Made by a program: the position numbers and the translations under genes
Origin: Zygnema circumcarinatum SAG 698-1b
Lineage: Eukaryota > Plantae > Zygnematophyceae
Direction of reading: 5' to 3'
Assembly: GCA_037447605.1 (NCBI GenBank)
Contig: CM074805.1
Location: forward strand, 2,823,361 to 2,887,360
DNA length: 64,000 nucleotides
Shown here: positions 3,701 to 47,415 of the stretch, in pieces
Layout: each line of letters starts with the position of its first letter
Position numbering within the stretch: position 1 is the stretch's first letter
The notes under the pieces: generated by a model
What the model was told of the DNA's origin: nothing
The model's input: the letters and a program-made list of their open reading frames with translations, nothing else
Databases searched by the model: none

Positions 3701-6700
3701 GACGAGACTCTGTTGACCGCCTCCATTGGACGGGTACCCGATGAAGCGGGCCTGAGCCTTCCTGACAGAGCTGAAGAAGAGGCGAATGCAGCGGCCAACG
3801 TGTCGGCCAAAGAGAAGACTTCTTGTGACGAAGGTGCAGGATCTACAGGGTTGGAGAGGACCTCCACCGATCATCTGAAAATGGTGGATGGCCAGAAAGG
3901 ACTCCTTGGGAGAGGCAAGAAGCGCAAGTCTGGGAGCCTTAGTAGGGAAGAAGATACTGAGTTAAAGCGAAGGCACAGAGAAAGGAGAAGAGAAGAGCGG
4001 AGGCGCGATGATAAGAAGAGAGAAGAGAGACAGCTTGCTGAAGCTGCAAAAGAGAAGGGGCAGAGCTCAAGCCGAGGGAGAGAAACTGAGAAGGATGGAA
4101 AACGGGATCAGTGGAGTGGCAGCAGAGACAAGAAGTCAAGAAAGAATCGCAGTGATGGAACGAGCAAAGGCTTTTCGGGAATCAAGCATTTTGCGAGTGC
4201 TCTTTCCCCCCGGAAAAGTATAGAAACAGAGGCCCAAAAGAAAGCAACAGGCAGAGCGCACCTACTGCAGGCTGATGCTGATGCTGCACGAGTGGAAACC
4301 CACGAGAAGGAGACGTTGCCTGGGTTTGGCTCGTTCCGTGGTTGGGTGAAAGCGGTTCAGAAAGGAAAGGCCTGCAGGCCCATCGCCTCTGCAACTGGAG
4401 GATTTGGCCCTGAGAGTAATCGCAATAAGGGTGTCGGAGGAGATGCTGGAGGCAAACCACCAGGAAGAGAAGCTGAAGTCCCCTTGTCTCGTGGCCCGGC
4501 AGGTGCTGCTGACGTGGCACCAGTGCAATCCGTGTCTGGCGATAACCCTGACAATGCAGTTGGGGAAATTGCTTCAACGCTGGTGTCTTTAACAGAGGTT
4601 GTGCCTGCGTTGAGTTCACTGCAAGGACAACCAGAGAATCGTGTTGTTTCCGAAAGGATAGCGGGTGATGGACCAGATGTTGCCGCTGACGTAGGCGAGA
4701 GAGGGAGGAGAACCGAGGAGATTGAGGCCGACTTGGACGGAAATACATTGGAAAGAGAAGTGGAGCATTCTGGACCAGATGCACCTTTCCCTGCTTCTGC
4801 TGCTCCTCCACGTCGTGCGCCTCGTGTGCATTCAGAAGATGTGGTTGTTCCGGGAGTACAGAGTGGAAGCGGCGGCACTGACGAGCAGGCTTTGGGCGGC
4901 GGCGACTCGGAGGAGCATAGTGGGCATAGGGTCAACCATGAAGTTCAGGTCGTCCCGTCGACTTCCCGGCTTTGGTCAGAACAGGGCGAACAAATACGCC
5001 CCTCGGAAACAGAAGGGCAGTCTGGTGGTGGGGTTCGAACGGAACGCATGGATCGCGAGCTGGAGGTGCTTGCAGGGGCGATGGGAAGGCAGCAACAGCA
5101 GAGGGTCGTTTCACATTCACGACAAGCATGTAATGCAATCCATGACCGACAATCAAGCGGCGGTTGGGCTGCAGCAGCCGCCAACGGTTGGCAGGGCAGA
5201 AAGCAGGGCCTCCATCCTCAGTCTCCAGCCCTGGAGGAAGGTCCGAGTGGAACCACTGGGACCGGCACTATGGGCACAGCAACGGGTTCAAGAGTTCCCT
5301 CAGGTTCAGTGCCCGGCATTCCTGCAGCAAGCGGTGGTGGACCTACCGGGGGGGCTGCCTCTGGGAGCACCTCTGATGGCAGACTTCGGGATCGTTGGAT
5401 TGGTCGCTTCATTGGGTCTTCTGGGAAGGCCTTCAGAGGTGGCGGTTTGGAGCCTTTGGAAGGCATTGGACAGATTGGTGATAAGCAACATTTCTCGGGG
5501 AGCAATGGGCAAGGGCAGTCAATACTCGGGCAAGGGCCATTAACAGGCAGTGATAAGCTTCCTGAGGAATATGCAGCTCGAGGGAGGGGAAGCCCCGTGT
5601 ACAATTCTTACTTGCGTTACAAGCCTGATGTACAGAATATGTCAGACATGGAGAAGTTGGATTCGGCTCGTGCTGTTCGAATGGCTCAAGGCCTTGTTCA
5701 AGGTCCATTCTTGCGTGGTCCCTTGGGAAGGCCTTGTACAGAAGGCCTGATTGCTCACTTGCCAGGGCCAGTAGGTGGCTCCGGCAATCTTATTGGAACT
5801 ATGGGAAGTGTGGCATTTGCACAGAGGGAAACTGCAGATGATGGATCAGGAGAGGAATGCCTTATGGGACTCGGAGCTGCAGAGTATGCAGCAAGTATGG
5901 CAGCTTTGAGGGCTTGGCGGTTAGAGGGTTCTCGCAGTCGGGAAGAGATTCTCAAAGAGTACGATGTGGGGGGGAACACAATGGGGCAAATGTCGCTGGC
6001 AGGGTCGGCATACCTCGCTTTAAACACGCGGACCCCAGGACTGCCTTTGTCATTTGGACAAGGGCAGCAGTTGGTTTGTCCGTTTTGTAACTTACCCGGA
6101 CATCCCTTAGTTCTGTGCTCTGAGACGAGAGACTGTGAGTTGCCTGGTTTGGTGAAGCGAGCAGGTTCATTGAATGTGAATTCCCGGTTGAAATCCCTCA
6201 TCGGCTTGTCGTCAAGCCTGAGTACGGAAAGCCCTTCTCAACTTCCCTTACAAATGCTTCAAGAGGGCTCAAGGCGGGCACTTGAGAGGACTGAAATTGG
6301 ACAGGATTCTGCAAGCAGAGGGGAGGAGCTGCAAGAAGCTGCAAGAAAAGATACCGCTGCCAGTCAACCACTCTGCTTGCGTTGTTTGGAAGCGGGCCAT
6401 TGGGGTGTTGAATGTAGTCTCACGTGTTCTGAAGCAGCAGCTAAGGCACAAGACAAAGAACGTCTAATGGTACGGTTAAGGAGCACAAACCCTAGCGCTC
6501 GTGAAAAGAGTTTGCTAGGCAGCAATAACTTGTCTGTGGCTTCGGAGCAGAGAGGTAATAGTACAGCCAGTCGGGCTCTGTCGGCTGTATGTGAAAGCTG
6601 TAGTCTCCATGGTCTAGAAGAGGGGAGTTGTGTACATATGAAGGGGAGAGCAAGATACTCGGAGGTGGAAGGCTGGGCCGAAAAGAGCCCTTCGAAGAGC

Positions 6701-25904: not shown

Positions 25905-28900
25905 TCACCGATGCAGAGGAGGGCATAAGATGGAACTCACTCTTGACGACAGCTGGGCATAGGATGTCTGCAGACATCGCAAGAGGTCCCGGTAGGACAC
26001 GATGAGCATGGAGCGCTGATCTCGGCTGATGAGGACAACCTTCTCCGGCACTCCAGCATCCAACTGCAGAAGCAGATTCCCTTCCCAACCGTAACTCAGA
26101 AGGTCGTCTATACTTATGAGCAACACAGAATCTCATGCAGGTCCAATCCAAACTGCTCTATAACCAGATTGAAAATACATGAAAGCGTCAACCGAAGGTG
26201 AAGGTGAACTGAAGGTGCCAACCGTATCCTCCTGGCAAAAAGCTTGTTTCCATGATATATGGTGGCAACAATCTAATCAAACATGACCTCTGAATTCGAG
26301 CTCCACACATGCTATGGAGACGTATCACCTTGTTCAGTGATTCTATGATATGTCCCCAATCCACTATCGGTCGCCCATCCTCGGTTGACTGCATCATAAA
26401 AGTTATCCAAAACCCATCAATCTTAGAAAAAAAAACCCATCAATCTCGTCAGACGACGTTACGAGTAGATGTGGATCTTTTCCCTACAGCAAGCTGCTCC
26501 AACGCACCCGCTGCATTCCATAGCTTCCCTTACCTGATGGAAGACAAAGTCTCGGAAAAGCTTCAGCAGATAGCGATCCCCCGTTTCTGACCACCCTGGT
26601 TCCAAGTCGTCATCAGGGCGCTCGTTGACCGTTGCCAACTTCACCATGAGCCGGAAAAGCCGGCCATTGTCGCACTCTTTCGATAGCTCATCCAAAAGGT
26701 TGTCGTTCCGCATATGGACTTGCTCTATCTGCAACGCCATTCACTTCACTCCTTGCAGCGATCAGCCACAATGCAATCTCCACATACCAATCTCCTAAAA
26801 AAGGCCTGGTCTGACAGTCACTTCAGTGGCTCACAATGGCCACCCGGATTGCAGTAAGGTTTAGAATATAAGTCAATTATTTAACGAGCGTGGGTCTGAT
26901 AGGTCAAAGAATAGATCTCCTGATTTCACCTACTGAACCCCCATATCTCTAGTTTCACACTTGCATTCCCCACGACATTGGATGGCCACCGTAACGAGAC
27001 AATTGCAGATGGCTTACACTTCCATTTAGAACCTCTATCCCAAGTCCCAGCACAAAAGCATACACCCATTGGATGCATCCCTGCTTTGCCAAGCAGCAAA
27101 TGAACAGCTGGTCACTTGCCTCCCCAAACATGCGCTCTGCGAGCACCGCATAGAGCTGCCGTATGCTATTGAGCCCTCCCCCCTCCGCATTGTCCGGAGA
27201 GGAGGCGAGCAGCGCTTGCGTGATGCGCACAAGGTCGGGGGAGAAATGGGCAGCCATGAAGTCAAGGGAAGAGTTCAGCACGGAGCCGCAGGCGAGGTTG
27301 AGCAGCAGGCGGCCACATCCAGCTAAATCCTCCCTCTGGAGATACACACACATGCATCCTCCGGTGTTTCATGTGAGTCACACGTATCTATGGAAAAACG
27401 TCGCCTATGCTGCGGGATCATTTGCCGGGTCAGACGGTAGCATCAGCATGCAGCGGGCCTACCTTCCATTAAGTTTTTTAGGGGGTCAGCAACGTGAAGG
27501 CAGAGTGAGGAAAGTGTCTAGAGTGTCCATCGGGCAGACGCGAAATGAGGAGGATACATGAAACCGGCATGTAGGATCAAAACCTTGTTTTCATGAGCGA
27601 CTGCGCATATTGCACTCGGGAGGAAAGCGCGAGGCCCATCCACAATGGAGATGCATTGGCCAAGATGAGTTGACCCTCACCATCTCACCTGCAGCAGGCG
27701 CGGGTCGTCTGCTTCATCTCCATTCAGCACATCAAGGACCCCCACTCCGCCTATCCGTAGTCTGCCTCTGCTTGTGAGCAGCACCTTGGAGGGGTCCAAC
27801 CCTCCCATTCGACAGTGCAGGCCGGCCCCATGGATGGCCCGCAGAGCAGCAGCGAGCTGGACAAGGTAACTCCACAGCTGTTCCTCGCTTACCTGCAGCA
27901 TTACCACGCTAGCATTCCCGAAGCAATCATTGGAAACTCTTCCACTTTCATCAGGGGTCGAGAGGCGAATATGGTCAAGGGTGGTTTTGCTGTTATGTCA
28001 TATCATCATGCACGTTCGGAAGAAGCGCTGGTGGCCTAGCTAACGCGTCTAAACGCTTCCCAAAAATTGGTCAACCAAGACCACAAATACAGTCAATCTT
28101 GCTCTCAGCTTTCTGCTTCCAAAGTCGTCTCATCACCACCGTCCAACATTCTCCGCCTCCAGTTCCATTCTCTGATTTCCATAGAACTTCAAAAATACCT
28201 TCAAGAGAAGCAACTCAGAAGGACGAAGTAGAAATAAACACTGACGCATTGTCTGAGAGTGCTTTACCATTATTCTCTCACTAGAACTCGTCCGCGGAAC
28301 ATACCGTGAGATGTACAACTCCACTGGTTGTGTTTTGGCTCAAATGCGCCACTTCCAGTGTTACTGCTGCCGGATAGTAGTCATGCACAAAAAAGAGAGC
28401 GGGCGAATCCTCTATCTCGCGGCTCACAAACGCCTCCCTTAGCGTCGTGACATGCGGATGCCCCGTCAGCGCCGCCCATCTCTCCACGGCCTCCGCTGCG
28501 GCAGCCGCCAGCTCCGCTGTGGGGATAACCTGCCGGGAGGAAACGAAACAAACAAACAAACAAACATTCCAAACATTTGGAGCCCTCCTTATAGTACTTC
28601 GAGCAAAGAACCAACTTACGGGAAAAACACTGAAAGGTGGTGGAGAATTCGTGCCTTGCACCATGAGATGGAAGTGCACTAGACAACATAAGCAGCATAG
28701 CTCTCCGTGTTCAGTCCCTAAGGGTTTCAGTCGTTTAGAAGCTCAATGAGCCATCTATATACTACTCAGAATTGTAAAAGGACAAACACGAACTTCATGC
28801 ATTGGCTCTACGGCAACATCTCCATTCAACGCTTTCCTGCTCCTTTCACTGGGTGAAGCCAAGAACACACACATGCGCACCAGTCTTCAAAAAAGAAAAT

Positions 28901-31900
28901 GACTATCAGGTGACCTTGCACCTTACCGCAGCAGGACTGCATGTGTACATGGATTAAATAACATCATCGACAGCTTATATTCCACTCTTTGGTCGCCTGT
29001 CCAGCATAGTCAAACTGGCAGGACAACGAAAGAGTACTTGGCAGATAGCGAGTCTAGGTTTGGGGTTCTGGGGAACTGAACTTCTCTCCTTGTCTTTCCT
29101 TTCGCTTGTCTCCGTTTACCTACCGTTCGCTTCCTTTCAGGAAACCTGACGCTCCATTGGACAGTCGACGAGGATTATCCAAAGGACTCGACAACCCAAC
29201 CTCACATCATCACAACCTCAGGGATGAACAACAACCATTTTGCAAAATCCTCTCCTATCATTCCCTTCAAACTTTTGTAACCTCAATAAAGAACCACGAC
29301 AAGGGTAAGGGGGCAGGGGTTGCAACTCTGTAACGCAAGTCCTGTTGCCATTGTTTGTGGAGAATCTCAAAAGGTCAGATTCCCAAACCATGCTCCACAC
29401 CCGTTGAGTTCGCTCCTACCTGGCGATGATCGATTCTGCGAATGGCGTAAGCACGCCCATCGCTAGAGCTGATCCCTTTGAAGACGATCGATCGCACTCC
29501 AAACGCGCTTCTGCTCACCTCGTCCTGCGCGCTGAAATCCTCCAACGGGTACAGCATGTGGTAGTGCTGCACTGTGTCTGGAAGGTCGACCATATCCTGC
29601 TCAGGGTCAAGCTGCAAGTTCCCATCTCCTCCCCTTCCTCCCTGTCATCTGTTGACCACTCATTGGGAAAGCGTTTCTGGGCCTGACAACCAAAGTGGCA
29701 AACAAGCCTGAGATGCATTGCTTATGCCTGTGTGCTCAACCATGAGGTGGGTGATGGGCGAAACGGGATTCGACGAAAAACCTCCTTGGACCGTCAATTC
29801 AACACCTGGTCATAATCTTCACATTACTTGCAAAGCCCCATGATACCAATGCGCAAGGTTTGGGGCAGCAAGAAAGCAAATTGGCTTGGAATGGAAGGCT
29901 GGAGTTTCGCTGAGTGTACAAAACTTGAAGATGCAGCTACCTCTAACCTGAAACTGCAAATTTCACAACTTTGATTGAAACTTCAGACGTTTTTCCGAAA
30001 ATCAACATTAAGACTGCTGAAGTTTTCTCCAACAGTACAGCCTCTACCACCCTCATCCCTACATTCCACGTGTTCACACCTGTGCTTGGATGAGAGCGCT
30101 GCGTTGCAAAAGCTCCTTCCGCAAGTCCTCTGAGATAAATTTTGATGCCAACGGCATCCGACCAGGAGTACCTACAACATTCCCAGTCCTACCAATTGCA
30201 TCCCTTCTCACACCCCCTCCCCCTCCCCCATAATTTCCTACTGCGCCCATCATCTGTTGAACGCTTGCAGCACCCAGTCCTTGTCTGGGCCCAAAAAAAT
30301 AGGTTGCACCGCCGTGTGTTGCAGCGGCAACAACCGGCGTGGTAGCCAATGAAGGCCCCGGAGAGGTAGGCCTGTACAAGTTGTGGGGGTTCCCAGAGGA
30401 AAGCCTCTGCGAGTGACTCGACTGCAACTGTGTGCTGCTTTGCTGCAACGGGGGTGTGCCCTGCCGCTGTGGCATTTGCATCCGTTGATATGAATTCTGT
30501 TGGGCCTGTACCGGGCCCATGGGTGCTGAGTGGTGGGGGAGTTGATAGAAAGCCTGTGCCTGGATGTGCTTTTGATGGGCCAACTGCGTTTGCGCTAACG
30601 AAGATTGCATCATGTGAGCGTGTCTTGCTTGCTTTTGCCTCGGCGATTTGTCCCCTAGATCTTTTCCGGATGCATCGAATACGGCATCACTAACGCCCCC
30701 ACTAAAACCCTTCACATCTGTTGGCACAAACAACCCATCCTTCCCTACAATCGGTCCTGTGCCTTGCGGCTGCCCTGCCTCCGAACCCATCTGACTTTTC
30801 TGCAGCCCCGGTCTCTGTGGCTGGTTTGAACCCGCCACCTGACCACCAGAAATTCCTGGAGAGGTCCCGGGCCGAGAACTCATAATTCCCCCGGAAACCA
30901 CGAACCCATTCCCCACACGCAAACTTGAGCCAAACCTCCCTCGGGCATATCTCACAGCTGAGCCAGGAGGACCCCCCCCCCCCCTTCCAGCTCGCTCTCC
31001 CACACTACCCATGGCAGAGACCCCATCCGGAGGACGGAGGATGGGAAGCATCTGCCCTGACACCCCCACAGCAGAACCTGCTTGTGATTCAAGGGAATTT
31101 GTTCCTGCCTGAGGAGGAGACATAGATGTCATCCCTAACGATGGATCATCACCATCTGGCAATGCAAAAGACTGTGCTGACACCCCGCCATCAAGCTCCT
31201 TATAGGATGAAGAGAGCCCGCTTCCTGAGCTTCGCGATAGCCCCCCTCCTGCTGTCACTCTTGATCCTACTGCTGCTCCAACTCCCCCCTTTGGCCCTGA
31301 TCCCGGTGTCGGCACCAAAGCAGGTGTAGTGGGCCGAATTCCAGGAGCCAATCCACTGCCCACAACAGCTCGTCCTGGCAAAGACTGCGCTTGAGGTTGT
31401 TGCATAGTGACTTGCTGTCGATTACTAAAGGAGCTATATGTAACAGTGGGTCGTGGAGTGGTATGGAGGGAAGGGCCGGCAGAACTAGGAATAGCGGCAG
31501 CGGCTGAGGAAGGGGGTAGGGAGGGAGATGGCGCTCGGCCCGTCGCTGCCAACTGTTTGGACTTTGGCACGAAAGGGGGAGCATTGGCAGCAGCTGCTAC
31601 ACCGGGTGAGATTCCAGAAGGGGGCAATCCTGCATCAAGCATGCCATGTAACAAAGGAATTGGACAGCTAATGAGGGGAATCAGACAACACTCAATATAG
31701 CCAGTACGTTTTAGTTACTGTCGGTCCAAATCACAGGATCACCTTGACGAGAAACAATTGTTAAAAAAAAAAGGAAAAATGATCACTGGAAGTCTTTGAT
31801 TCGACACGATCTCAAAGTTGGTCTATACCACAGAACAGTCGTAGTTTGTTAGCCTATAGAGGTCCAAAAATGTTTGATGAGTCATTCGAATTGTGAGCAA

Positions 31901-34900
31901 AATTGACGATCTTTGAACAATCATAAGTAAGCTCCATAAGTTACGGTGCTGTTACAACAATGCGTTTCAGTCCTAGACTAAAATTGCAAGCATTTGGTAT
32001 AACGGGTTATTTTATGAGACAAGGGAAGAGGGAGTAAAACAAGACGAGTTCTGCTCAGAACTGATGTTAACCATTCATGTTCTATGTTCTTCTCAGCTAC
32101 ATAATTACCTCAACCCCTAATCGGCTCCTCACCATTATAACGACCCAACGGGCAAGATATCCCTAATTTCAACAGCAACTTTCTTTTTGACATGCACCAA
32201 CCATATTTAATGTAATACTAATAATCGAATAAGGGCATCACTTAGACAAGACATTTGAAACAACTGCAGATGGTTGGACAACCGCCAAAAGAAAACCAAA
32301 AAGTAATGGGGAAAGGAGAAGATAGTAAGAAACAGGATCTGGAAATAGAAAGAAAAAAAGAAGAAAGACAACATAAACAGGATATCTGAGAGGGACATCG
32401 ACGACTCGCATTGACTTCCAATGACTTCATTGCCGCCCTGACATTATGAGAAACGTCACAAGACCAAGACATGTAACAAATCTGGTCAAAGTCTGAGCAC
32501 CAGTTACCTGCTGTTCCCGGGCTGCCTCCTCCCCACGCAGTGAGGGCGACCCTCTGGGCGGCAGCCACGGCTGCGGGCACAAAGGCCGGAGCGGAGATGG
32601 GCAAAGTCTTCGATTTACTTTGAGTCTGCGAGGGCTGCGATGGGGCCGGAGTCGCAGAATCTGAGGGATCGGCTGCTTTCGCCATCCTCATCCATACATA
32701 GCAAACCCACAAGTTTTGTCAGTGTGGGGAGGGAAGCAAAAAATTAGCAGTCCTTTAATAGAGTTTATGCCGCCAGTGAAAATTGCAACAAAATAATGGC
32801 GGGGAATAGAAGGGCTTCGGCTATAACTTGATGTCAAACGTGCGTGGTTGAGGCAAAGGATATTAATGAATATTCTGACAATGCAAGTTTCAAACACGAA
32901 AGTGGGTGGGAGTCAGAATTCTTCTATCGATCGAACCGTGGTGGGTGGGTGAGTGGACGGAAGGGGGAGGGAAACAAAAAAATGGAAAATAGAGGTCACC
33001 TCCCTCAGTTGATGCAGAAGTGACTTCAAGACTTGCGCTCGACTCCTCTTTAGAATCCTTCGAGGGCCCAATTTCCGTTCCTATGCTGCTTTCCATAGGT
33101 TGTTTTTCAACAATAGACAGCCCGGAGGCTAAAGCAAAGGCAGCATCGCTAGCAACTGCCTGCGTTTCAGAGGAGGCAGCATAGCCCGAGGGTGTCCCTT
33201 CCGTGCTTGAGTCAGCCTCCACAGTTTCACGAAGACCACTTTGAAGGTCTGAGTCTGTAACATGGTGCGCTCCCAGGGGTGAGGTCTCGGCGCCACGAGA
33301 ATCCCCTGCTGCGACAGGCACAGGATTTCCTTCGTCCTTATCTGATACTCCAACAATTTCGGCAATTCCTGTCAACACAGTCGTTAGGAATTTTTCCAAC
33401 CATCATGATAGTGGTGGGATAGAGGACAAATCTGTTCCAGATTTACGGCTCTGTGTGTGAAGCTGCAGTTACATGGGAAGGGACAGATAGCAAGCTAGTG
33501 CAGACCCACCTAAGCTCCGTGAGGACTGTAGAACTGCAGCCGTCTGAAGGGCGGCAGAGCTGCCAGCTGTCGGAGGCGGGGCAGTAGGCCTGCAATCCGA
33601 GCTGTCAGACATCAGCATCAAATTTTTTCCAAGGATGTTGGCTGGAAAATCTGTACGAGCTCTTGAGGCATCCAAATAAGCAAGAAACTAAATACTTCCT
33701 CCTTCTCTGAACAACGCATCCAGGAAAAAAAAGAAAGGGATCATTTCTTAAAGAAAGACTGGCATATCACTGACATAAGTTACATGTTCTGAACAAAGTA
33801 TACATATCTTGACCTTGACATAGCTAACCCATACTAACACCACTTGGCCCTTAGGCATATGGTCATGTGGTTTTGCAGTTGGAAACCAACTTAAAACTTC
33901 TCTTTAACGCAATGAAGTTTTGTCAATTTCTCAAGTTAGAAAGGCTCACATGTATGAATGGCTATGAATCCACTAATGGACCTTACCCGGTTTGCGTCAC
34001 CCCTGGAATGTCGTGGTTGTATTCACATCCATTCTTCTCATTCTGTTCCACCGAACAAGGGCGACAATGCTTCATCGCAGGTAAAGCAAAAAACACGTGT
34101 AGAAGAGTAGAATCTAAAGACCTGGATGCTGTACAATTGCCTTTATTGATGTCCAATATCTCTCTAATGCTCCGATCAAGGACTCGTATTCGGCTGCATG
34201 ATGGGAAACCCCCCCCGTCTCTGTGGCTATGTCACAGCTTCTTCAACCCCTAAACCTTCAGGCATAGAGCCACATGAAGGGGATGAAACATTCGCAACTG
34301 GCTTGGTGATCAAACAGGGAGAATAACACAAGTACACGCATTTAGACAAAACCTTCTACCTGAGCGCATTTCACTAACAGTACACAACCGCGTGCAAGTC
34401 TGTTATGGCCAGCCATCCACCTTCCGAGCGTTGACTCGCCTCTGACTTTCCAGAACCAAACGTGTCTGCAAAAAACCCTTTGAACGCATACAAGCAAAGG
34501 GTTCCGTCTCACCTTGCAGAAGCCATAGAGAAGGAGCTCGCGACAGGCCCGCTCTCTCTTTGGAACCGCTGCTTCCCGCCATTCCCAAATGCCACGAACT
34601 CAAAATTGGCAGGCAGTAGCCAGAGTGAGTGCTCGGAAACCGTAGGCAGCACTTCTCTATAACCCTAGAAGGTATGGACTTGCATGACCAACAGACAGAC
34701 ATCATCGCTGGCATGGAGCAATGCTGGATGACTTCGCTTGTAGTTAAGAGTCATGGATGTAAGGGGAATTGGTTTGCGTTGCATTGCGAAAATTTGGGAG
34801 ACCGAATGTCAATGTTAGGATTTTGGATCGCCTTAGCCAACATGACAAGATTTAGCTGTCTTTCAGAGCTTTGCACTTGCACATCAGAGATCTCAGGTTC

Positions 34901-37129: not shown

Positions 37130-37818
37130 TTTTGGACGCCACGTGGCAGCCCACTAGAGGCTGCCAGGCGCTATACCCCTCCCTTTCTTGCGCGCAACGA
37201 CCCCCTTCCCTGCCCGCAGGCCGGCCCCCATGGCTACGCTCGCCCCGCAGGCCGCCACGTGGCAGCGGCCATGGCTGGCGCACTTTCCGCCGATAAGACG
37301 AAGCCAGTCCAAATTTCGCGGCTCGTTCCGCCCCTTCGTCCGTACGGTACTCTTCCACTTCGTGCCGTACAGATTCTATTCAAGAAAACAGACTACAGGA
37401 TGGGGTCCTCATTATTTCCACCCTAATTCAGTGCGTTCCCAAGAAATTCGCCCTGATTTTGCCGAAACCACTCTTTTGTACGGTAAGTCTGTGTTAGCCG
37501 TACCATTCGTACCATTCGTACTAACCGTACTAGCCGTACTTGCTGTACTAGCCGTTACGGGCTTAAGCAAAACTCACCGAATCTTCCCGCACGGGCCGCC
37601 GTAAGAGGCGCTTGCTAATTTAATTTTCGCCATGGTTTCGGCAAATATTTTGGGCGAAAATATTGGGTAGCGAAAATATTGGGGAGGGGGTACTTGTAGC
37701 GGGGCCCGTACCGCCCCCGGCCCGCCTGTACGTGACCGGACGGGAGCAGGCCAGCAGGGAGGGAGGGATGCGGTGTCGGCGGGGGGGCCGGGCTCCCTCG
37801 CATGCATGCGCTTCCAGA
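37130..37818. promoter_or_regulatory. Divergent promoter region between PAN3 and the WWE-PARP gene
   Basis: The genes are head-to-head about 690 bp apart. The region holds two identical GCCACGTGGCAGC (37138, 37254), a 9-bp-period GTAC array (37500-37548) and three AAATATT units (~37640-37680). Confidence 0.65.
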
Positions 37819-40800
37819 ATGGCCTTCAATCACATCTCCACCGAGGATTTGGAGAAGCTGCAGAGCCCTCGTTACAGATTCTTTTACTACGACGAAGGCG
37901 GCTGGCATGCGTTCGAAGAACCTCTGAATCGCAAGCTGGCCGAGAAGTTCGCTTTGGGGGAACCGAATGTGACGTACATCTGGGAAGGGTGTTCGTACAT
38001 GGTGATGTTTAGCGAGTTTCGGCAAAAGAATACGAGTACAGCATACACTCGTTCCGTGGGATGGCGAGATGAAATGACGAAGACAGAGTGAGTAATTGTG
38101 GGAACCTTGTCTTTTAAAGGTGCAGTTCTGTGGCTGATTGCCTTCAGGATGTAGGTGGACCGGCTTCGTGATTGTTTCTCTTCCATACTATACGTATGTC
38201 ATCTAGGGATACTGCACTTATGTTATTTATAGGTACTAGCGTCCGAAAGTTGTTTGAGAGGCCTTTTATGCCCAGAGTTAGACTCGACTGCATGAAGGTT
38301 TTTTGCTCTGGAGTTCTTATTGCCGTTATTGGCTTGGAATGTCCTCCACTCTACCCCACTTCAAACTCTGAGCTTACGATCCATTCCAGCTTACGCACTT
38401 TTCCTGGGGGTTTTTTTTTTTTTTTCTGCAATTGGTTCTTTGATAATGACGGACAGTTTTCGTCCTCCCACACCATTTCACGGAGTGGACCCTGCGCTTC
38501 TACCTGCTATGAAAGCAGAAAGAATGTCTAGGGTTGCTGATATTATTGTTCCACTCAGCCCAGATAGCGCTGACGCAGTGGAAGTCACCAAGAGGTTAGA
38601 AAAAGTGCCCTTTTTAGACTGAAGGCCTTCTTTGACAGTATTTCTGGACGTTTCATCGGCACGTGTCATGTGTGAAAAGGTGATGGGAGATGTTCGTTTA
38701 CAGACGTCAATTTATCGCTGTTACGTTATTAGATAATGGGACTTTATTTAACAATAAGCCAACTGGCTGCATAATGTACGTGACCATGGTAGGATAATCT
38801 ACAAAAGCTAGGCAGGTCATATTTATGCTGCGGACGTTGAAGGGCACATTTCGAAATGGTGGTAGATATTTTGTCTGGTCTCCAGGAGAGACGAGGTCTG
38901 GTTGTTTCCTAAGCAATCGGGCGACTTCATGAATGAAGGATGCGAAGTATGAATATAAACCATCTAAAGAAGCCCAGCCTCAGAGCTTGTTGCAGCTGGG
39001 ATTTGTGGAGTACCGAGTCAAGGAAGGAATTCAAGTCTTCCCTTAATACTAGAATGAGCATAGGCTTCTCAAGGGAATATGCGATATTTCCAGTTTCATT
39101 ACCTTTTCTGTTCATAACAAAAATATACTTCTTGGGGGATGTTCAGAGAGACACGTTGACCAGCAACATGGAAAAGATGCTGCTTATGCTGCTTCAATCG
39201 CATGGAGACTTTGTTTAAAGTTTGCAAATTGGCTAACTTTTTCCTTGCTCTTGGTTTACTTTGCGTCTTATTCAGGTTTAAAGCTGGATTGGGTTCCTTT
39301 GCTGATCGTTTCCACGTTGTTGAAGTGCAAAAGGTGGTCAACTCAAATCGCCGTATCTCTCACTTCAGGTATTTCAGGCATAGCTTGAGTTTTTTTATCC
39401 CTTTGAATCATGCTGGATTATGACTAGTTGTTATTAGTTGAGTAGTTGTACCCTTCTTGAGTGTTGGCTGATTCACGACTCTTCATTAGCAAGGCAGTCA
39501 TTTCCAAGATTTATGTCTACTTGAAATAAGAAGCCTTCGCATGGCTATTAACTCAGACGCAGTACCTAAGGCCACATGCAGGGTTTGAGTTGTTTCTCGA
39601 AACCTATGCAAAGGCTGATGGATTCATCTTGCGGTTTCGTACAGTTTAGCTTATGGAACCAATTTCAGTGTTTGCATGGCATGATATGGCATGTCGCACT
39701 GCGAGTGGCACCACTGGATTCAAAACTTCAATGGAATCTGTTTCTCTCTCATAATGTGTGTTTAAGCCTCTGTAGTTCGGGCTGCAATACTGGCTTACAC
39801 TAATGTCAAGGGTATCATTTTCGAGTTTTTTTCAAGTGATTTCTTTAAAAAATCAGCCATGTGGCAGATAGTGAGTCATTTTGACTGAAATATTTGTTTT
39901 TTTTTTGCTTCGATGATCATTCTAATTGCGTGGTTGGGCCATTCATCCGTACGGAGTCATGTTACATTTTTTAACTATGTGGATACTCAAGAATCGACCT
40001 CTTGTTTTTTTTTTTTTCTGCGTATTTGGGACTTTAGATGCCGTTAAATACGATTTTTTTGAACCTTCGGATCTTCTGAAGCTCATTGTGTATGCGTGCA
40101 TCATGGCCATCATAGATGATGATGCTTCCCGATGCAAATGTGGAGGAGGGTAGCATGCACGTGATGTCACTGACATTCTGCCTTACTGTTCTTGGTTGCC
40201 ATCGCTATGCGGTTTCCCAGTTGCATTCTTGTCTTGACAGCTCGTTTGTGGCAGCTTGTTGAGGAAGAAAGGTATTGATCGTGTTGGTGGGCATTGCTGA
40301 AGTCTCTCTTATGGATAGTGATGATGCCCTTCGTGCTGTTCTGCCTCCAATTGTGCAGAGTTATAAGAGAGTCTTGCCCCAAGAAACACGCATGCACTGT
40401 CAACTCCATCTCATGCATAGGGAACCCTGCAGGGAAACAGCGAGTGAAGTCGCAGCAAAACGGGGAGGTAATGCAAATGCGCGCATGGCGTGGCATGGAA
40501 CTACAGCCAAAGCTGTCGAGTCGATAGTAGTTTATGGCTTTGGCCAATCGTCCAAGCCGAAGAATGGCAATGCTTGGGGCTCAGGGATTTATTTTGCACC
40601 GGAGAACAAGACAACTGTGAGTAATCTCGTCTTTCCCTGACGTCATGATCAGTGTCCTTTCTTGGACGTTTGGCCATTGGAAACTCCTTTTAAATATTAC
40701 TGCAGATCATCATGGCTCCTTGCCAGCTGACTCAGAGCAGTACCAACATGCTGTCATCATAACTTGAATGTAACAAGCTGACGCAAGTTTTTAAATCGTA

Positions 40801-42182
40801 AAAGGTCAGAGGCTAGTGAACTTTGCGTGGTAGGAACGATGCTGAAGTGCAAGGATTTTCTTTGGTTATGCCAGGAAAGCAGGGTTTACAACCCTTCAAA
40901 GGCGCCTAATTAATATCCCTTAAAGAGTCATTATCCAATCCGCCCTTCCCATCTTAAACATAACTTGTATGCCGTGAACTGACGTGGCATTCTCGTTTCT
41001 TTAATTTAGTAAGCATTGTGAACGCGAGTAGAGTGTGGTGAAGTTAACTATCTGGCTTCAAAGGTGGAAAAGATAGGCGTTTCTATTGCTTTGACGACAC
41101 CGTTTTTATGTGTACTTACTAGGAATGCGTGAAAGTAGAACATAAAAGTTCTGACGAGTGGCCGGTGCTAGACAGTGGAGATGGTCAGCAGCAGAGGCAT
41201 TTTTCCCCATTTAAACACATTTGACAGCAAGGGCTTTTTTGTTAGTTTAAAGAGCTCATCATTGTTATCCAGAGGCTGTGGCTGAACAACTTTCTTTACT
41301 TTTGCGTTCCTGCAACTATGGGAACTGTGGTAGTGATAGATGTGTCCCAAAATCTCACGACAGCTGGTCGTAGTGACATGGTGCTGCCTATAGGTATGAT
41401 GAGTTCAGCCGATTCACTATCACAGAGTTTGCATGTAATCTAGAGACTTTCTTGTTATCAGTTTACATAGATGTATGATACTTTGTGAATGTATCTGGTT
41501 CATCTATCGAACCCGATTTTTGCACTTGGAGGATGTTTGAAAACCAGTGCGCAGTCGTTACATTCGCTGACGAAAGAGTTGGGGTTTGGTGCAGGTAAGT
41601 CTACCCTACGCAGTTCCCGACCAAGAAGACTTATGCCGGATTCTAATGTGCCAAGTTATTCTGGGACAGCAAGAAAAATTGACTTATGAGAATTCTATGC
41701 TTACTCCGAGCAGTCCTGCTTATGATACCGGTGCGTTTTCAATTTGAAATGCAGAATTGTAAGGACATATATAAGAATGGTTCAGGGTGATACTAGGAGT
41801 ACATCCTGGCCAGAAATGGCTCTGTTGGGAAGAATGACGGGGTGGGGCGCATACTGCTGCGGCCCTTCCTCTCGACTGATCTAGTCAGCAAGATTTTAAA
41901 CTGAAATACAGAGCTTTGTGACAATTTGTGGTATCACCGCATGAAAGTGGGCTGGCACGACCGCAGTTTGGAGATACATGTGCATTTATGGGGCAGCTGA
42001 AAAGCTCTCTCGTCCTGTGTGTCCGTAGACATCCATCAGTTACGCCGTTGGTTTAACTAGACGGTCACTTGTTTGTTGCAGGGGTGGATGATTTGGTGGA
42101 CCCACGCCTGTACGTTGTGTGGAGCCCCTTTAGCAACTCCCACACCCTCGTGGAATTTGTGGTCGTTTTCAAGAAGCTATGA
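37819..42182 (+). CDS. SRO: WWE + PARP-catalytic-domain protein, SRO/RCD1-like, lacking RST
   Basis: Exon 37819-38087 encodes a WWE-like domain (RFFYYDEGGWHAF...YMVMFSEFRQKNTSTAYTRSVGWRD). Later exons give FKAGLG..., KRGGNANARMAWHGTT...GFG...GSGIYFAP (40432-40616) and GVDDLVDPRLYVVWSPFSNSHTLVEFVVVFKKL* (42082-42182), matching SRO-family PARP-domain segments. One or two internal exons (40.7-42.0 kb) are unresolved. Confidence 0.83.
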
Positions 42183-43212
42183 GTGAGCAGACCGGCAAAA
42201 TCGTCGGGTGTACGAGTACCTGCGCCGCGCTTAAAAGCGGTCCAAGGCTGTATGTTATGGAGGCAGCAGGCTGGTCAGCCATCGACTCAACCCAATGTTC
42301 ATATGATGAGGAGTGGTGAAGCTCATTCGGTCGCCTTAACGGAGGTCACAGCAATAAGCAGCTCTGCCGCAGGTTGATTGACGTGATGATGTTGTACAGT
42401 GATGCGAGCGCTGCGGGCGATGAGGCCAGTGGGGGCTTCTCGGGGGGAGTCAACGATTGGTACAAGTGGCAGTTTTTTATTTTTTACTGGAGGGAAAGCA
42501 TTTTTGTTGTAAATTGTGGGTCGTTATTTCCAAAATGGGATCCTGCAGGCTAGGCATGTTATTTTCAACTTGTTGTTTGTGGCAATGAATTGTTGCTTTT
42601 CAAATGGATCGTCGTCATTGGAGATTCCTTCTTGTTGAATGTTGTTCTGGGCATCACAATTTGTTCTTTTAAATTGCTTTGATACGTTACTGGCATGGAT
42701 GTTAAGGGTCAGAATGCAATAACAGGAAAATTTAAGATTTCATGTAAACCAAGTGAACGAACACAAAAACGGACTCGAGTTCGAGACATAGACCGCCTTT
42801 TGCGATCTGCTGCTGCGAGTTCTGCATGGCACTACTGTGTACGGACGGGGCCAGCCAGGTTCACAGAGCGCGCGGCCGCAAGGCCAACAGTTGCACGACA
42901 AAACTGGGACTGGGACTGAGACTGAGACTGCGCCACCAAGCCGACAGCATAGAACCGTATCCGGCGACGCGCATGCGTGCATCGCGTACGGACCGGACCG
43001 CCGGACAGCCGGTCGCCGCGCGCGTGTGCGCCCGCGTGCAAAAGCGACAACGTTGCACCGACCGGCGCGTCAATAATCACCGTCACCGGCAGCGGACGGC
43101 TGAGATTAGCCCCGATTTCCGGTACGCGATCGACGGTCGAGGACGCGCGCAGTGATTGCAGTCGGCGTGGGAAAACAGCGCTTTCACGCGGGCGGACGGA
43201 TGCGCACGCGCC

Positions 43213-43863
43213 CACGTGGCGCCATCGGGACCGCCCGCCTCCCGCCTGCCCACCCGAGGTGGTCCGGGCGGGCGATCTGCGCCTTGAATCGCCCGCCCGC
43301 CCGCGGCCCTCCAAAACAGCTGGCCGCCCGCCGCCACCGCTGACGTGGCCCCCGTGCGCGGCCCACGCTGTCCGCATCGCGCGTGCTTTTCCGCCGACGC
43401 GGCGGACCAATGGCGGCCGCGCGCGGATCCCAGCGGACGGCGCACAGCGCAAGCGCACGTGCCGCCGGGACGCGCTCCGCGGCCGCCCGCCCGCCAGGTC
43501 GGTCGGTCGGCCAAGGAGGGCGCCGCTCGTGCAAAAAGTTGACCGGCCCGATGCATGCTGCAACGCCCCGCCGATCGTGCCACGTGTGAGAGAACTCCAC
43601 TATTGGTCTGCCTCTCCGGGCAACTTCCGAAAAATACCTCCAAGCTGCCCGTAACCGAAAGGGCCTCGACCCCGCCCGCGGACTCGTCGGTGCCGCCTGC
43701 CCGCGCAGGGAAAGTTTTGGGCCTCAACAGCCAGCCCGCGCACGCGCGGTCCCGCGCGTCCGTGTCCCTGTCCCCCCCCGTCCGCGTCCCCGTCCGCGGG
43801 CGCGTCCGCGGGAGCACACGGAGCCGCCGTTGCGCGCACGTGGGCCGCCTCGCTCCGCACGTG
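43213..43863. promoter_or_regulatory. GC-rich upstream region of the TPR gene with repeated G-boxes
   Basis: CACGTG at 43213, 43456, 43581, 43837 and 43858, plus TGACGTGG at 43341. Confidence 0.5.
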
Positions 43864-44135
43864 CGAGTGGCGGCCCCGTTCCCACCGCAACGACGGGCGG
43901 ACGGGTCCCTCCCTCCCTCCCTCTCTCCCCGGCGGGCGGCTCCCAGAAGGTGGGACCCGGCGGCCGGGGGCCGTTCGCGCTGAATCTCGCCGCGTGGCGC
44001 GGAGATATTACGAGGGGGGGATCAGGGGTGGGGGCAGAAGCAGCAGGAAGCAGCAAGAGCAGGGCTAGGGTTGGGAGGAGGTGGAGGAGGGGCTGGAGGC
44101 AGGGGCAGGAGAGGCATGCGCGCACGCCAGTGAGG

Positions 44136-47100
44136 ATGTTGACCAAGAGTTCATCCATGTCGGCCCTTTCCTCGCTCGTGTCTTCCTCCGGAGAGGTGCG
44201 AGATTGGAGAATCAGCGATTTCTGCATAGAAGGACGGCAGGCTGCGCGGAGCAAACCAGCGAGGGCTTCCCTGGGCTCGCCCTTCTCTTCGCAATCGTCC
44301 ACGAAACCCGCTTTGGCGGAGTCGGCTTCCTCCCCTAAATGCAGGGATGGCGACTGCAGTGTCCACGGAGGCCTGGCGAGCCCGAGCCCTAGCGGCAGTA
44401 GCGGCAGCCATGGAGGGCTACGTTCTCGTGAGAGAGCGCTTTGGGATTTTGAAAACGATTTGGTCCCATGGCCCTACATCCGGCGCGCACAGTCAGAGAC
44501 AGATCTGCAGAATTTGGCCAAAAATGGGGGAATTGCAGCCAGGCTGATGTCCGATACTCTTGGCTGCATGGGGGGATGCCAGCAAGCCGCCGGGAGCACC
44601 GATTGCAGCTTAAAGGGATGGAGTTTGCCGTCCCCTACCAATTGTGATGTTGAGACTGGGAGGCACCATCGGCGTCGATGGGCTAGAAGGAAGTCTTTCT
44701 CGTCTTTTTCGAAGCGACTGCCTGAAGGGGATGTTGCAGAAGTGGAGGAAGATCAGACAACTCAGCAGAACTCGACTGGAAGACTTCTGAAATTGGCTTT
44801 ACCATGTGAAGTGAATGCAACTGGTTCAGCTGGACCGTCTTCTGTGCATGTAGGGGTGGCCCAAGAAGGTTGTTTTTCGTCTCGTTCTCATACCCGCTCG
44901 TTAACTCCTGAAGAACAGGAGGGGCTTTTTAGTCGGTTAGGTGTCAAGACAGGCATATCCTTTGCTAACTCCGCATTTGTCCAATCTCTACCTTCTCCAT
45001 CCTCTCTTCCCTTTTCAAGAGCAAATAGCAACCCTGTAGTTATTCATCCTGAAGCTGTGGAACGGCTCATCAGATCGTCAGAGATGCAGGATTTGGAGGT
45101 AGTTGCCTGTAAGTGCAGTCAGCAAGACTCGCGATCTTCCCACAATGTTTCCGGGTGCGCTTGTAGCTCAAGTACAGTCTATTGTTTCGTGAATGATAGT
45201 CAACAGGTCATGCGCTCTGTTAGCCAAAGCCCTTTAAACTGTGGCACCCAGACGAATGTAGTCGGCCATTCTGAAGATTTCTTCGGGTCACAACAGCTTT
45301 CTGGAGATGGTTTTGGGCCGGGGGGCTTTGGCGGAGGAGGGATGACTGGAGGGAAGGGAGGGAGGCGATGTGGAGGTGCCCCTCGTGATTGGGAAGAAAG
45401 CAGCCACGGCAACGCTAACTCCAGCTCCACAGATGCGTATTATCAGCAGGCGTTGGAGAAGGATCCGGGGCATCCGTTGCTCCTACGAAACTACGCTCGT
45501 TTCCTTTCTGAGGTGAGTGGCACTGTGAGGGACGTGTTTGCCATTGTGGATGCGGAATCTTCACGACTGCCAATGCTCGAGAGCAATGTAGGCAGCTTGA
45601 AGGAGATGAGATGTTCTAATGCCGGCAAACGTTGGTGTATGGTCTCATGTTTGATGGATTGTAAGTAGCTCTGAGTCTGCAGAGTGTCGCCTCGTTAGCA
45701 TTTTGCCTGTGTGTGAAGGATCGGGATTTTAATACACGTAGTATGTCTAGAATGTTGAACGCTGCATGGCCTTGAACTTGGTTTTGACCTTGTCAAGCAG
45801 ATCATCCTTGTGTATCTTTTCTCCTGGTAGGGAGCCTGCTTACAATTTCTTGATCAAAACCAAGAACTGCAAGTAGAACCTTGGCTTGCATGTTGGTAGT
45901 TCAATGGAGTGTGGGTTCGTTCCCGGTGAAAGATGATTGAACTTCTGAAGGTTCTTATGAGTTGTATGATTCAGAATCATGCTTGGATTGATCGATTACG
46001 GGCGCTGCCTGCTGTCCCTTGCGTTGTCGTTCTGCGTGTGCGGAACTACTTGTTCATTTTGAGCCTGCACCAGATTGGCTGCCGAAAATAGGAGTATTAA
46101 TGACCTGATCTGGTATTTCCTGGGAAGCGGTGAATAGTTTCTTGTGTGCTTTTCTTCCAAGGTGTCTGTTGACGACCTTTGTTGTAATTGCAGCTTTTAT
46201 GGTTCCATCGATGGCATTTTGGTTGGACAAAAGTAGCCTTCTCCTGTCTGCTATGTCTAGGAGTTTAGCAGCCTTGTCAGAGTCGATCCATGATGATAAT
46301 AGTATCAGCAATAGCAATCTTGCCTCAAGAGGGTAACATATATGAGAGAGCCTCGTCTTGGATGTGTTTCCGTTTCCATCCTGCATGTGTCCTCGTGAGG
46401 TCCTGTTCGACGGGTGTTTTTGCCTTTGGTGAATGCAATTGCTTCTGCTTGTGTCTGCATGAGTTGCAGAAAAAATGATCGATTGATTGAGTGAATGCAT
46501 AATGAACATATGGATGATGCATGAATGAGACAGCGCACTGGTCTCCATTGGTTGAGTGACACGATCGTTTTTTGCGATCTTTTGTGTTTCTTTCATAGAA
46601 TAATTTTCTTTAGTTCATGGACCTGATTCCTGGATCCTATTGAAGGCTATCCAGAATGTATCTAGGCTTGCTATGGCCTCGCAGACAGATTCGATTATTT
46701 AGACCCTTTCTATGCACTACGCAGTAGAACCGTTCATGACACCTCGTGACACCTCATGACACCCTCATGAAGTGTCGTGAGGTGTACTTTTCTACGCATG
46801 TGAACCTGAAGGCAGGGAGGAGTGGAAGAAGGGTGTTGGATGCTTTCAAATATGTGAAATGGTTCTACAAACAAAACTGTTGCCCTTTGCTGTTTGGTCA
46901 TTTAATGGCCTTATCTTGTCCAGGAAATAAGCTTGGTCTATCTGTTGGCTTTTGCATTGCAGGTGCAGCATGACCTAGTCAAGGCAGAGGAGTTTTACGA
47001 GCGTGCTATTTTGGCCAATCCGGGCGATGGAGAGGTTTTGGCGCAGTATGCGAAGCTCATATGGGAGGCGCACAATGACCATGAGAGAGCCAGCAGCTAC

Positions 47101-47415
47101 TTCGAACAGGCTATTCAAGCGGCACCCGCAGACTGGTCAGTGCATTGGCTTGCTTCAAGTTAGTGAGAATAGTTACATCATTTTTTTTTGTCTGGTAGCA
47201 CTGCATAGGTAGGACCATGCCAAGATGTCAAGAACGAGCTTTTCGTTTACTTCTTTTCTCCGCCACTGATTGACAACTCAAGTCTGACACTGCCACTGCC
47301 ACTTTCCTGCAGCTATGTGCTGGCAGCGTATGCATCGTTTCTGTGGAGTGTCGACAACTCCAGTACGGAGCTTGGATTGAAAACCTTACAAGGAGAACAT
47401 CGTTGTCCTTCTTGA
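44136..47415 (+). CDS. Plant TPR-like superfamily protein (long Ser-rich N-terminus, C-terminal TPR helices)
   Basis: Exons 44136-45512, 46963-47135, 47313-47415. N-terminus MLTKSSSMSAL resembles the MLLRSSSTP start of this family. C-terminus STDAYYQQALEKDPGHPLLLRNYARFLSE|VQHDLVKAEEFYERAILANPGDGEVLAQYAKLIWE...ASSYFEQAIQAAPAD|CYVLAAYASFLW. Confidence 0.9.

Follow-up and report, generated by a model that had tools for sequence, protein, structure and literature searches.

Plant stress biology has yet to explain why the RCD1/SRO hubs retain a PARP domain that is strictly conserved but mostly dead (Vogt et al. 2022). A gene of the alga Zygnema circumcarinatum SAG 698-1b, lying at positions 37819-42182 of a 64,000-nucleotide stretch of contig CM074805.1 (hereafter the window), bears directly on this question. 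From the letters alone, it had been predicted to encode an SRO/RCD1-like protein with a WWE domain and a PARP-fold domain, an H-Y-L triad and no RST domain, and was proposed to be a pre-RST ancestor that still mono-ADP-ribosylates. As an RST-less algal member with a complete NAD+ cassette of the mono-ADP-ribosyltransferase (mono-ART) type, its product provides a concrete test protein: did the family start as a combined ADP-ribose reader and writer, and were the capture of the RST domain and the loss of catalysis later steps? Our reading is that this is an expressed nuclear gene for a two-domain protein of 306 residues, which is most likely a WWE-guided mono-ART like human PARP11, PARP7 and PARP12; we would put the probability of this at roughly 0.55.

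The gene comprises six exons on the + strand and is defined by spliced RNA contigs, all from one public run (X1) that behaves as RNA. These contigs span seven joints, every one of them GT..AG, and thereby complete a gene model that the original prediction had left to be finished from cDNA: 918 nt of coding sequence precede the stop, the 306-codon frame is open and the phases fit. Also in agreement with that prediction, a WWE domain is followed by a PARP-fold domain, the latter being encoded by exons 2-6, and both are recognized by Pfam above the respective cut-offs. For the WWE domain in exon 1, there are matches with PF02825 (E = 3.8e-8; 34.0 bits against a cut-off of 21.1) and PF23467 (E = 2.6e-8), and for the PARP domain, the exon-4 open reading frame (ORF) piece is on its own sufficient for a match with PF00644 (E = 1.1e-8; 35.2 bits against a cut-off of 26.7).

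The NAD+ site and the WWE domain

The three triad codons named in the original prediction were checked against the sequence and encode the expected residues, namely, His (CAT, 40494-96), Tyr (TAT, 40590-92) and Leu (CTG, 42108-10); in protein numbering, the key residues of the site are His188, Gly189, Tyr220, Thr228, Tyr233 and Leu283. The His of such a triad binds the adenine ribose of NAD+, the invariant Gly that follows it (Pro in RCD1 and in wheat SRO1, Ta-SRO1) holds the nicotinamide amide, the Tyr stacks on the nicotinamide ribose, and the Glu is required only for chain elongation (Vogt et al. 2022). A stretch of 47 residues, starting ahead of His188 and ending past Tyr220, aligns gap-free to the active human PARP10 with both the His and the Tyr matched, and Leu283 falls in the column of the third triad residue, which is Asn in Arabidopsis RCD1 and M/I/F/V in PARP14/TIPARP-type proteins. 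Taken together, His188-Gly189, Tyr220 and Leu283 reproduce the clade 3 mono-ART pattern, i.e. an H-Y-(I/L/V/M) triad with Gly after the His. Across the pocket as a whole, the algal protein reads HG-Y-T-Y-L, compared with HG-Y-S-Y-M/I in most of the animal outgroup proteins (with Ala in place of the Ser in the TIPARP-like proteins).

The published triads of RCD1 and wheat SRO1 are Leu-His-Asn and Leu-His-His, respectively, and a set of 33 SRO PARP domains that keep both His-Gly and Tyr "might mono-ADP-ribosylate" (Vogt et al. 2022). The H-Y-L triad, together with the motif WSPF.NSH that follows the Leu, recurs in the Marchantia protein Mp5g18990 (P0023) and in the Logan contig L001 (WSPFSNSH in the algal protein, TPFINSH in Marchantia and WSPFINSH in L001), and this repeated occurrence argues for constraint on these residues. 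To judge from these residues, the algal protein, Mp5g18990 and the L001 product would be the members of the SRO-like clade that most nearly resemble a working mono-ART, which is support for activity but no proof of it. Given the intact His-Gly/Tyr/Tyr/Leu cassette, an active mono-ART is plausible.

The same cassette might, however, belong to a protein that does not transfer ADP-ribose at all, being instead a non-catalytic reader of ADP-ribose or poly(ADP-ribose) (PAR), or a scaffold, whose PARP-like domain is structural or protein-binding, as in Arabidopsis RCD1; His, Tyr and Leu would then be plesiomorphic, or would bind NAD+ or ADP-ribose without transfer. We consider this possible, although rather doubtful. 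The clade does contain the proven inactive RCD1 and Ta-SRO1, His-Gly and Tyr are also retained in many SROs of ferns and mosses for which no activity is known, and the WWE pocket residues are kept; by contrast, all five pocket positions of the PARP domain fit active mono-ARTs, and the third triad position is hydrophobic as in the animal enzymes, whereas in the RST-bearing SROs it is mostly Arg, His, Cys or Trp (22, 8, 7 and 5, respectively, of the 52 sampled, with Leu in 2). In the ankyrin-WWE-PARP type of other algae, this position is Arg or Ser. The retention of the same state in Marchantia and L001 also speaks against a purely non-catalytic role.

An N-terminal WWE domain is a feature of type A SROs, and its presence here is established by Pfam, by a structural model with a fold search, and by alignment with the WWE domains of SROs. 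The AlphaFold model of exon 1, built with an alignment of WWE segments from 29 relatives, has a predicted local distance difference test score (pLDDT) of 89.9, and a fold search of the PDB superposed it on the WWE structures of TRIP12, HUWE1 and RNF146 with root mean square deviations of ~1 Å over ~66 residues; the matched structures were solved with ADP, ATP, ADP-ribose or iso-ADP-ribose. In RNF146, the AMP half of iso-ADP-ribose is held by Tyr107, Tyr144, Gln153 and Arg163 (PMC8853533). The first three of these coincide with Tyr23, Tyr60 and Gln69 of the algal protein in an ungapped phmmer alignment and its extension, whereas Arg78 is one position off Arg163 and is equated with it on the strength of conservation across SRO WWE domains. 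The residues of the AMP sub-pocket are conserved across these domains.

For a WWE-guided mono-ART, we infer ligand binding by the WWE domain, NAD+ binding and catalysis as follows. The WWE domain would probably dock on ADP-ribose or poly(ADP-ribose), bringing the protein to ADP-ribosylated partners; the catalytic domain would then transfer single ADP-ribose units, either to itself or to its neighbours, by substrate-assisted catalysis, with the hydrophobic Leu283 standing in place of the Glu of the polymerases. Additionally, splicing at exons 4 and 2 may set the amount of full-length protein.

Several observations weigh against this mechanism. The equivalents of RNF146 Arg110 and Trp114, which we take to belong to the phosphoribose half of the pocket, are Glu26 and His30 in exon 1, such that recognition may not be strictly of the PAR linkage; with these substitutions, the domain may recognize ADP-ribose or an adenine nucleotide. 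In the PARP domain, the Ser of the nicotinamide pocket is replaced by Thr228. Moreover, neither RCD1 nor Ta-SRO1 binds NAD+ (Vogt et al. 2022), and thus the SRO-like clade appears prone to the loss of activity. In both of these proteins, a Pro occludes the donor site. When 1.84 billion representative proteins were searched with exon 4, the best identity was 62%, with no closer ortholog and nothing identical or near-identical; either the gene is unannotated, or it has been modelled differently, or the proteome lies outside the library. Lastly, both a frame-shifting acceptor at 40359 and the retention of intron 4 are well represented among the RNA contigs, and so much of the RNA of this gene may be non-productive.

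Placement in the SRO lineage and absence of an RST domain

The search of this protein library with exon 4 returned 130 matches, nearly all of which are plant SROs or streptophyte WWE-PARPs. The SROs (WWE-PARP-RST) derive from ferns, a lycophyte, mosses, Araucaria, Victoria and Tasmannia (the protein of the latter being named 'inactive PARP SRO2'), and the streptophyte WWE-PARPs from Marchantia, Chara, Closterium and Logan contigs; PARP14-like, TIPARP-like and PARP10/14/15-like proteins form the tail of the matches. Word-index protein searches with alignment A1, P0003 and the PARP region of P0023 gave 2-4 matches each, the gene's own protein not being among them, although a length rule of 0.55-1.75 bars exon pieces as queries there, and this blank weighs little.

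Exons 1, 4, 5 and 6 are colinear with the SROs of ferns, lycophytes, mosses and seed plants. The domain alignment reveals a series of SRO-type signatures in the algal protein, namely, GNAN before WHG, GFGQ, KNG, APE and VDD..P..Y.VW, as well as SRO loop lengths; the animal type is characterized by GFNR, GKNA and a longer loop. When compared with the PDB, exon 4 finds PARP10, PARP14 and PARP15 best (E = 2e-5 to 4e-4) and SRO1 more weakly (1e-3), RCD1 and wheat SRO1 being degenerate in precisely the exon-4 cassette, whereas exon 6 matches RCD1 (5NGO; E = 0.003) and SRO1 (7PLQ) only; exon 5 gave no significant match. An affinity with the tankyrases or PARP1-3 was rejected, as these scored more weakly with exon 4 in the PDB than PARP10/14/15.

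In the IQ-TREE phylogeny, exons 4, 5 and 6 were entered as separate rows, and exons 2 and 3, which are weakly placed, were left out, the MAFFT fragment placement of exon 2 being wrong; the outgroup consisted of the PARP14-like, TIPARP-like and PARP10/14/15-like proteins from the same search, without PARP1-3, tankyrases or PARP6/8/16. All three exons fall within the SRO-like clade (ultrafast bootstrap (UFBoot) 96), and the RST-bearing land-plant clade (81) does not include them. Marchantia is the neighbour of exon 6 (UFBoot 71), exon 5 groups with the ankyrin proteins of algae, and exon 4 is basal. When summed over the exons, hidden Markov model (HMM) bits for the sub-families are 130 for the land-plant SROs, 108 for the algal ankyrin type, 90 for Marchantia alone and 71 for the animal type. 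Summed log-likelihoods (lnL) for placement on a fixed reference tree are -248.2 for a sister of the algal ankyrin group, -248.7 for the base of the SRO-like clade, -250.2 for a sister of Marchantia and -253.0 for a sister of the RST-bearing SROs; these four placements lie within 5 lnL units, and hence the order of branching is not separated.

The alternative that the protein belongs to the animal-type WWE-PARP clade (PARP7/11/12/14 like), anciently retained or horizontally acquired, and is no relative of the SROs, is very improbable. It would account for the shared WWE-catalytic architecture, for the H-Y-hydrophobic triad and for the ranking of exon 4 in the PDB; it is contradicted by the nearly exclusive recovery of plant and streptophyte relatives among the 130 library matches, by the restriction of exon 6 to RCD1 and SRO1 and by the SRO motifs and loop lengths, and it carries a penalty of >60 lnL units (-313 and -312 for placement inside the TIPARP and PARP14 groups, respectively). 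The PARP domain thus belongs to the SRO lineage (Citarelli clade 2), as had been proposed, and does not group with clade 3 within the limited sampling of the outgroup. From these comparisons, we regard the protein as a deep branch of the SRO-like clade, the lineage being settled and the exact branch not.

An RST domain is absent from the gene. Pfam RST (PF12174) matches none of the exon pieces. Furthermore, an RST profile was built from 46 RST domains, taken from the land-plant relatives recovered in this analysis, and searched against all stop-free six-frame pieces of the window; this extends to the downstream region where such a domain had been suggested as a test, and the result was again blank, the best match (E = 0.14) being on the opposite strand inside another gene. 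As controls, the PARP profile detects exons 4, 5 and 6, and RST domains are found in the land-plant matches by both the RST profile and Pfam. The ORF had been predicted to end right after the PARP domain, and it does: the TGA directly follows the last strand of the PARP fold (FKKL), within the last exon and upstream of any possible donor, and the RNA contig with the joint between exons 5 and 6 reads on through this stop into the 3′ untranslated region (UTR), as far as 42548, with no further splicing. It could still be argued that an RST-coding exon is joined in an isoform absent from the RNA contigs, since there is a single informative RNA-like run and contigs lose rare forms. With no RST in the six frames of the window, a stop that precedes any donor, an RNA depth of about zero beyond ~42625 and a separate TPR-like gene as the next one on the + strand, we consider the chance of this to be minimal. 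As the transcription-factor-binding RST domain is missing, the algal protein cannot act as a hub of the RCD1 type.

The original interpretation is upheld in part: the protein is SRO-like and lacks RST, whereas its status as the pre-RST ancestor is no more than possible, given the near-equal SRO-like placements. RST-less SRO-like members exist in algae and in a liverwort, and the present gene is one of them, though not necessarily the ancestor; 'ancestral' is a possible description of it. The RST domain is reported to be a streptophyte invention that is present in TAF4, and its subsequent fusion to a WWE-PARP protein would agree with this. We tentatively suggest that the algal gene, Mp5g18990 and L001 might be a surviving lineage that has kept the ancestral SRO state, i.e. 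a small, active WWE-guided mono-ART, and that the land-plant hubs captured RST, after which their NAD+ site decayed; this scenario is, on balance, unlikely.

The original prediction had also described the SRO family as land-plant specific. Such a restriction was indeed stated in the surveys of 2010, which found SROs in land plants only; streptophyte algae, however, explicitly could not be examined there, and relatives from Chara and Closterium, like that from Marchantia, are already public as uncharacterized entries. Our literature searches found papers neither on SRO/RCD1-like proteins from streptophyte algae nor on Mp5g18990 of Marchantia. The present gene extends the SRO-like lineage beyond land plants, the point that those surveys left open, and it may illustrate the state of the RCD1/SRO hubs while they were still enzymes. 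The gain is moderate, as relatives are in the databases and the retention of His-Gly and Tyr in some SROs has been published (Vogt et al. 2022).

Gene structure, transcripts and surroundings

The coordinates of the gene are collected in Table 1. Contig depth in X1 is ~65-130 across the exons and ~2-23 across the introns; it is not a measure of expression level, and contigs drop rare forms. Runs X8-X10, which bear the same species label, contain no part of the window and thus contributed no evidence. The original prediction had begun exon 4 too early: the productive acceptor is at 40433, and the upstream residues of that ORF are intronic. The alternative acceptor at 40359 adds 74 nt and shifts the frame, leading to a stop at 40525-27, with either a WWE-only product or a target of nonsense-mediated decay as the outcome. 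One RNA contig omits exon 2 in frame (joint 38087>39276); its product would be 46 residues shorter and would lack the first strand predicted for the PARP fold. Intron 4 is retained whole in one unspliced contig at a depth of ~23.

Table 1. Features of the WWE-PARP gene in the window (> denotes a splice joint in the RNA contigs)
Feature	Positions	Strand	Content and evidence
Exon 1	37819..38087	+	Start codon and entire WWE domain (residues ~19-88); joint 38087>38457; Pfam WWE; model pLDDT 89.9
Exon 2	38457..38594	+	Linker, then the start of the PARP fold (first strand and beginning of a helix, as predicted); joints 38087>38457 and 38594>39276; colinear in the exon alignment with SROs
Exon 3	39276..39368	+	Early part of the PARP fold (N-terminal helix and strand); joints 38594>39276 and 39368>40433; exon alignment with SROs and domain alignment
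Exon 4	40433..40616	+	NAD+-binding cassette: His188-Gly189 (40494-40499), Tyr220 (40590-40592); joints 39368>40433 and 40616>41595; Pfam PARP
Exon 4, alternative 5′ extension	40359..40432	+	Acceptor 40359; joint 39368>40359 in an RNA contig
Exon 5	41595..41730	+	Second nicotinamide-pocket Tyr (Tyr233) and central strands; joints 40616>41595 and 41730>42082; seed HMM match (E = 1.1e-7); domain alignment
Exon 6	42082..42182	+	Leu283 at the third triad position (42108-42110), last strands, stop TGA (42180-82); joint 41730>42082
3′ UTR	42183..42620 (end approximate)	+	RNA contig continuous to 42548; depth 80 in bin 42426-42624, ~0.5 beyond

The abundance of frame-shifted and intron-retaining RNA forms, together with the want of close orthologs, is what might be expected of a lineage-specific paralogue of an expanded algal WWE-PARP family that is decaying or functionless. 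We nevertheless judge this improbable: the 306-codon frame is intact over six exons with canonical splice sites, contig depth over the exons is high, and the key catalytic and WWE residues are conserved. Moreover, a tblastn search of the window with the exon peptides found neither a paralogue nor a further copy of any of the exons.

RNA depth is low upstream of ~37849, and the 5′ end and the start codon (37819 or 37768) are therefore not fixed by RNA. An in-frame ATG at 37768 would add 17 residues to the product that starts at 37819, and a 41-codon ORF that overlaps the start begins from two out-of-frame ATGs, at 37802 and 37806 (window positions 37768-37927). Just upstream of the gene, at 37500-37680, there are tandem units of ~9-10 nt (gtaccattc / gtactaacc / gtactagcc) and gaaaatattggg-like repeats. 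One X1 contig ends at 37679 and continues for 120 letters that are absent from the window; it was taken as a repeat or an unrelated contig.

No upstream exons on the + strand, such as might encode ankyrin repeats, were seen in the window, where the upstream genes are on the - strand. One of these, at 27000-33400, has several exons, among them a pseudokinase-like piece (28281-28679) and a long ORF rich in Gln, Pro and Ser (30074-31654); judged by eye, it resembles a PAN3-type poly(A) nuclease subunit. Downstream, a GC-rich (62%) stretch at 42.8-43.7 kb separates the WWE-PARP gene from the TPR-like gene on the + strand (43590-47400), which has a first ORF of 692 codons and TPR-like repeats near its C-terminus (46906-47160).

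Comparison with known systems

The land-plant SRO family (RCD1 and SRO1-5; WWE-PARP-RST) shares with the algal protein the N-terminal WWE domain followed by a PARP fold, the family signatures, the loop lengths and the colinearity of exons. The algal protein differs in its length (306 residues versus ~400-800) and in having no RST; in comparison with RCD1 and wheat SRO1, its His-Gly, Tyr and Leu are intact, and it branches outside the RST-bearing clade. Several land-plant SRO entries (P0001 from Musa, P0019, P0026 and P0006) have two PARP-like units or a duplicated N-terminal PARP half, representing either tandem duplications or mis-joined models.

Mp5g18990 of Marchantia polymorpha (MARPO_0073s0044) has the same combination of WWE and PARP domains with H-Y-L, and no RST is detected in it by Pfam or by the local RST profile. 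In addition to the motif after the Leu, both Mp5g18990 and L001 share with the algal protein the motif A.A..SIV.YGFGQ after the His. Mp5g18990 differs in being 603 residues long, with a long linker and a ~150-residue tail of no assigned nature; identity in the core exons is ~50-58%, and a sister placement to it is no better than the alternatives. On L001, a Logan genomic contig (SRR33208241), a WWE-PARP gene resembling Mp5g18990 in type occupies positions 3431-4970. It has a single short intron (~4583-4664), with no room for an RST domain before the next gene; a SWEET (MtN3) gene adjoins it.

The ankyrin-WWE-PARP proteins (GBG73640 and GBG74651 of Chara braunii, CAI5516991 of Closterium and Logan P0043) likewise belong to the SRO-like clade, are algal, lack RST and have retained His-Gly and Tyr, and it is with these that exon 5 groups. 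They differ from the present protein in their N-terminal ankyrin repeats, a long low-complexity insert, the motifs WHGAP and GFSL, and the Arg or Ser at the third triad position. In the public Closterium sp. model (P0051; 1486 residues), the ankyrin-WWE-PARP is fused to a complete GRAS domain (residues 1124-1483), probably as the result of two neighbouring genes having been merged by annotation.

Human PARP11 (and also PARP7, PARP12 and PARP14) serves as the working model, in that a WWE domain directly precedes a catalytic domain of the H-Y-hydrophobic type; PARP11, at 338 residues, is also of similar size to the algal protein. The clade 3 mono-ARTs nevertheless represent a different PARP lineage, from which the algal protein departs in its shorter loop before the last strands and in two additional residues after the third triad residue. 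In PARP11, the triad itself is H-Y-I (Jaspers Table 2).

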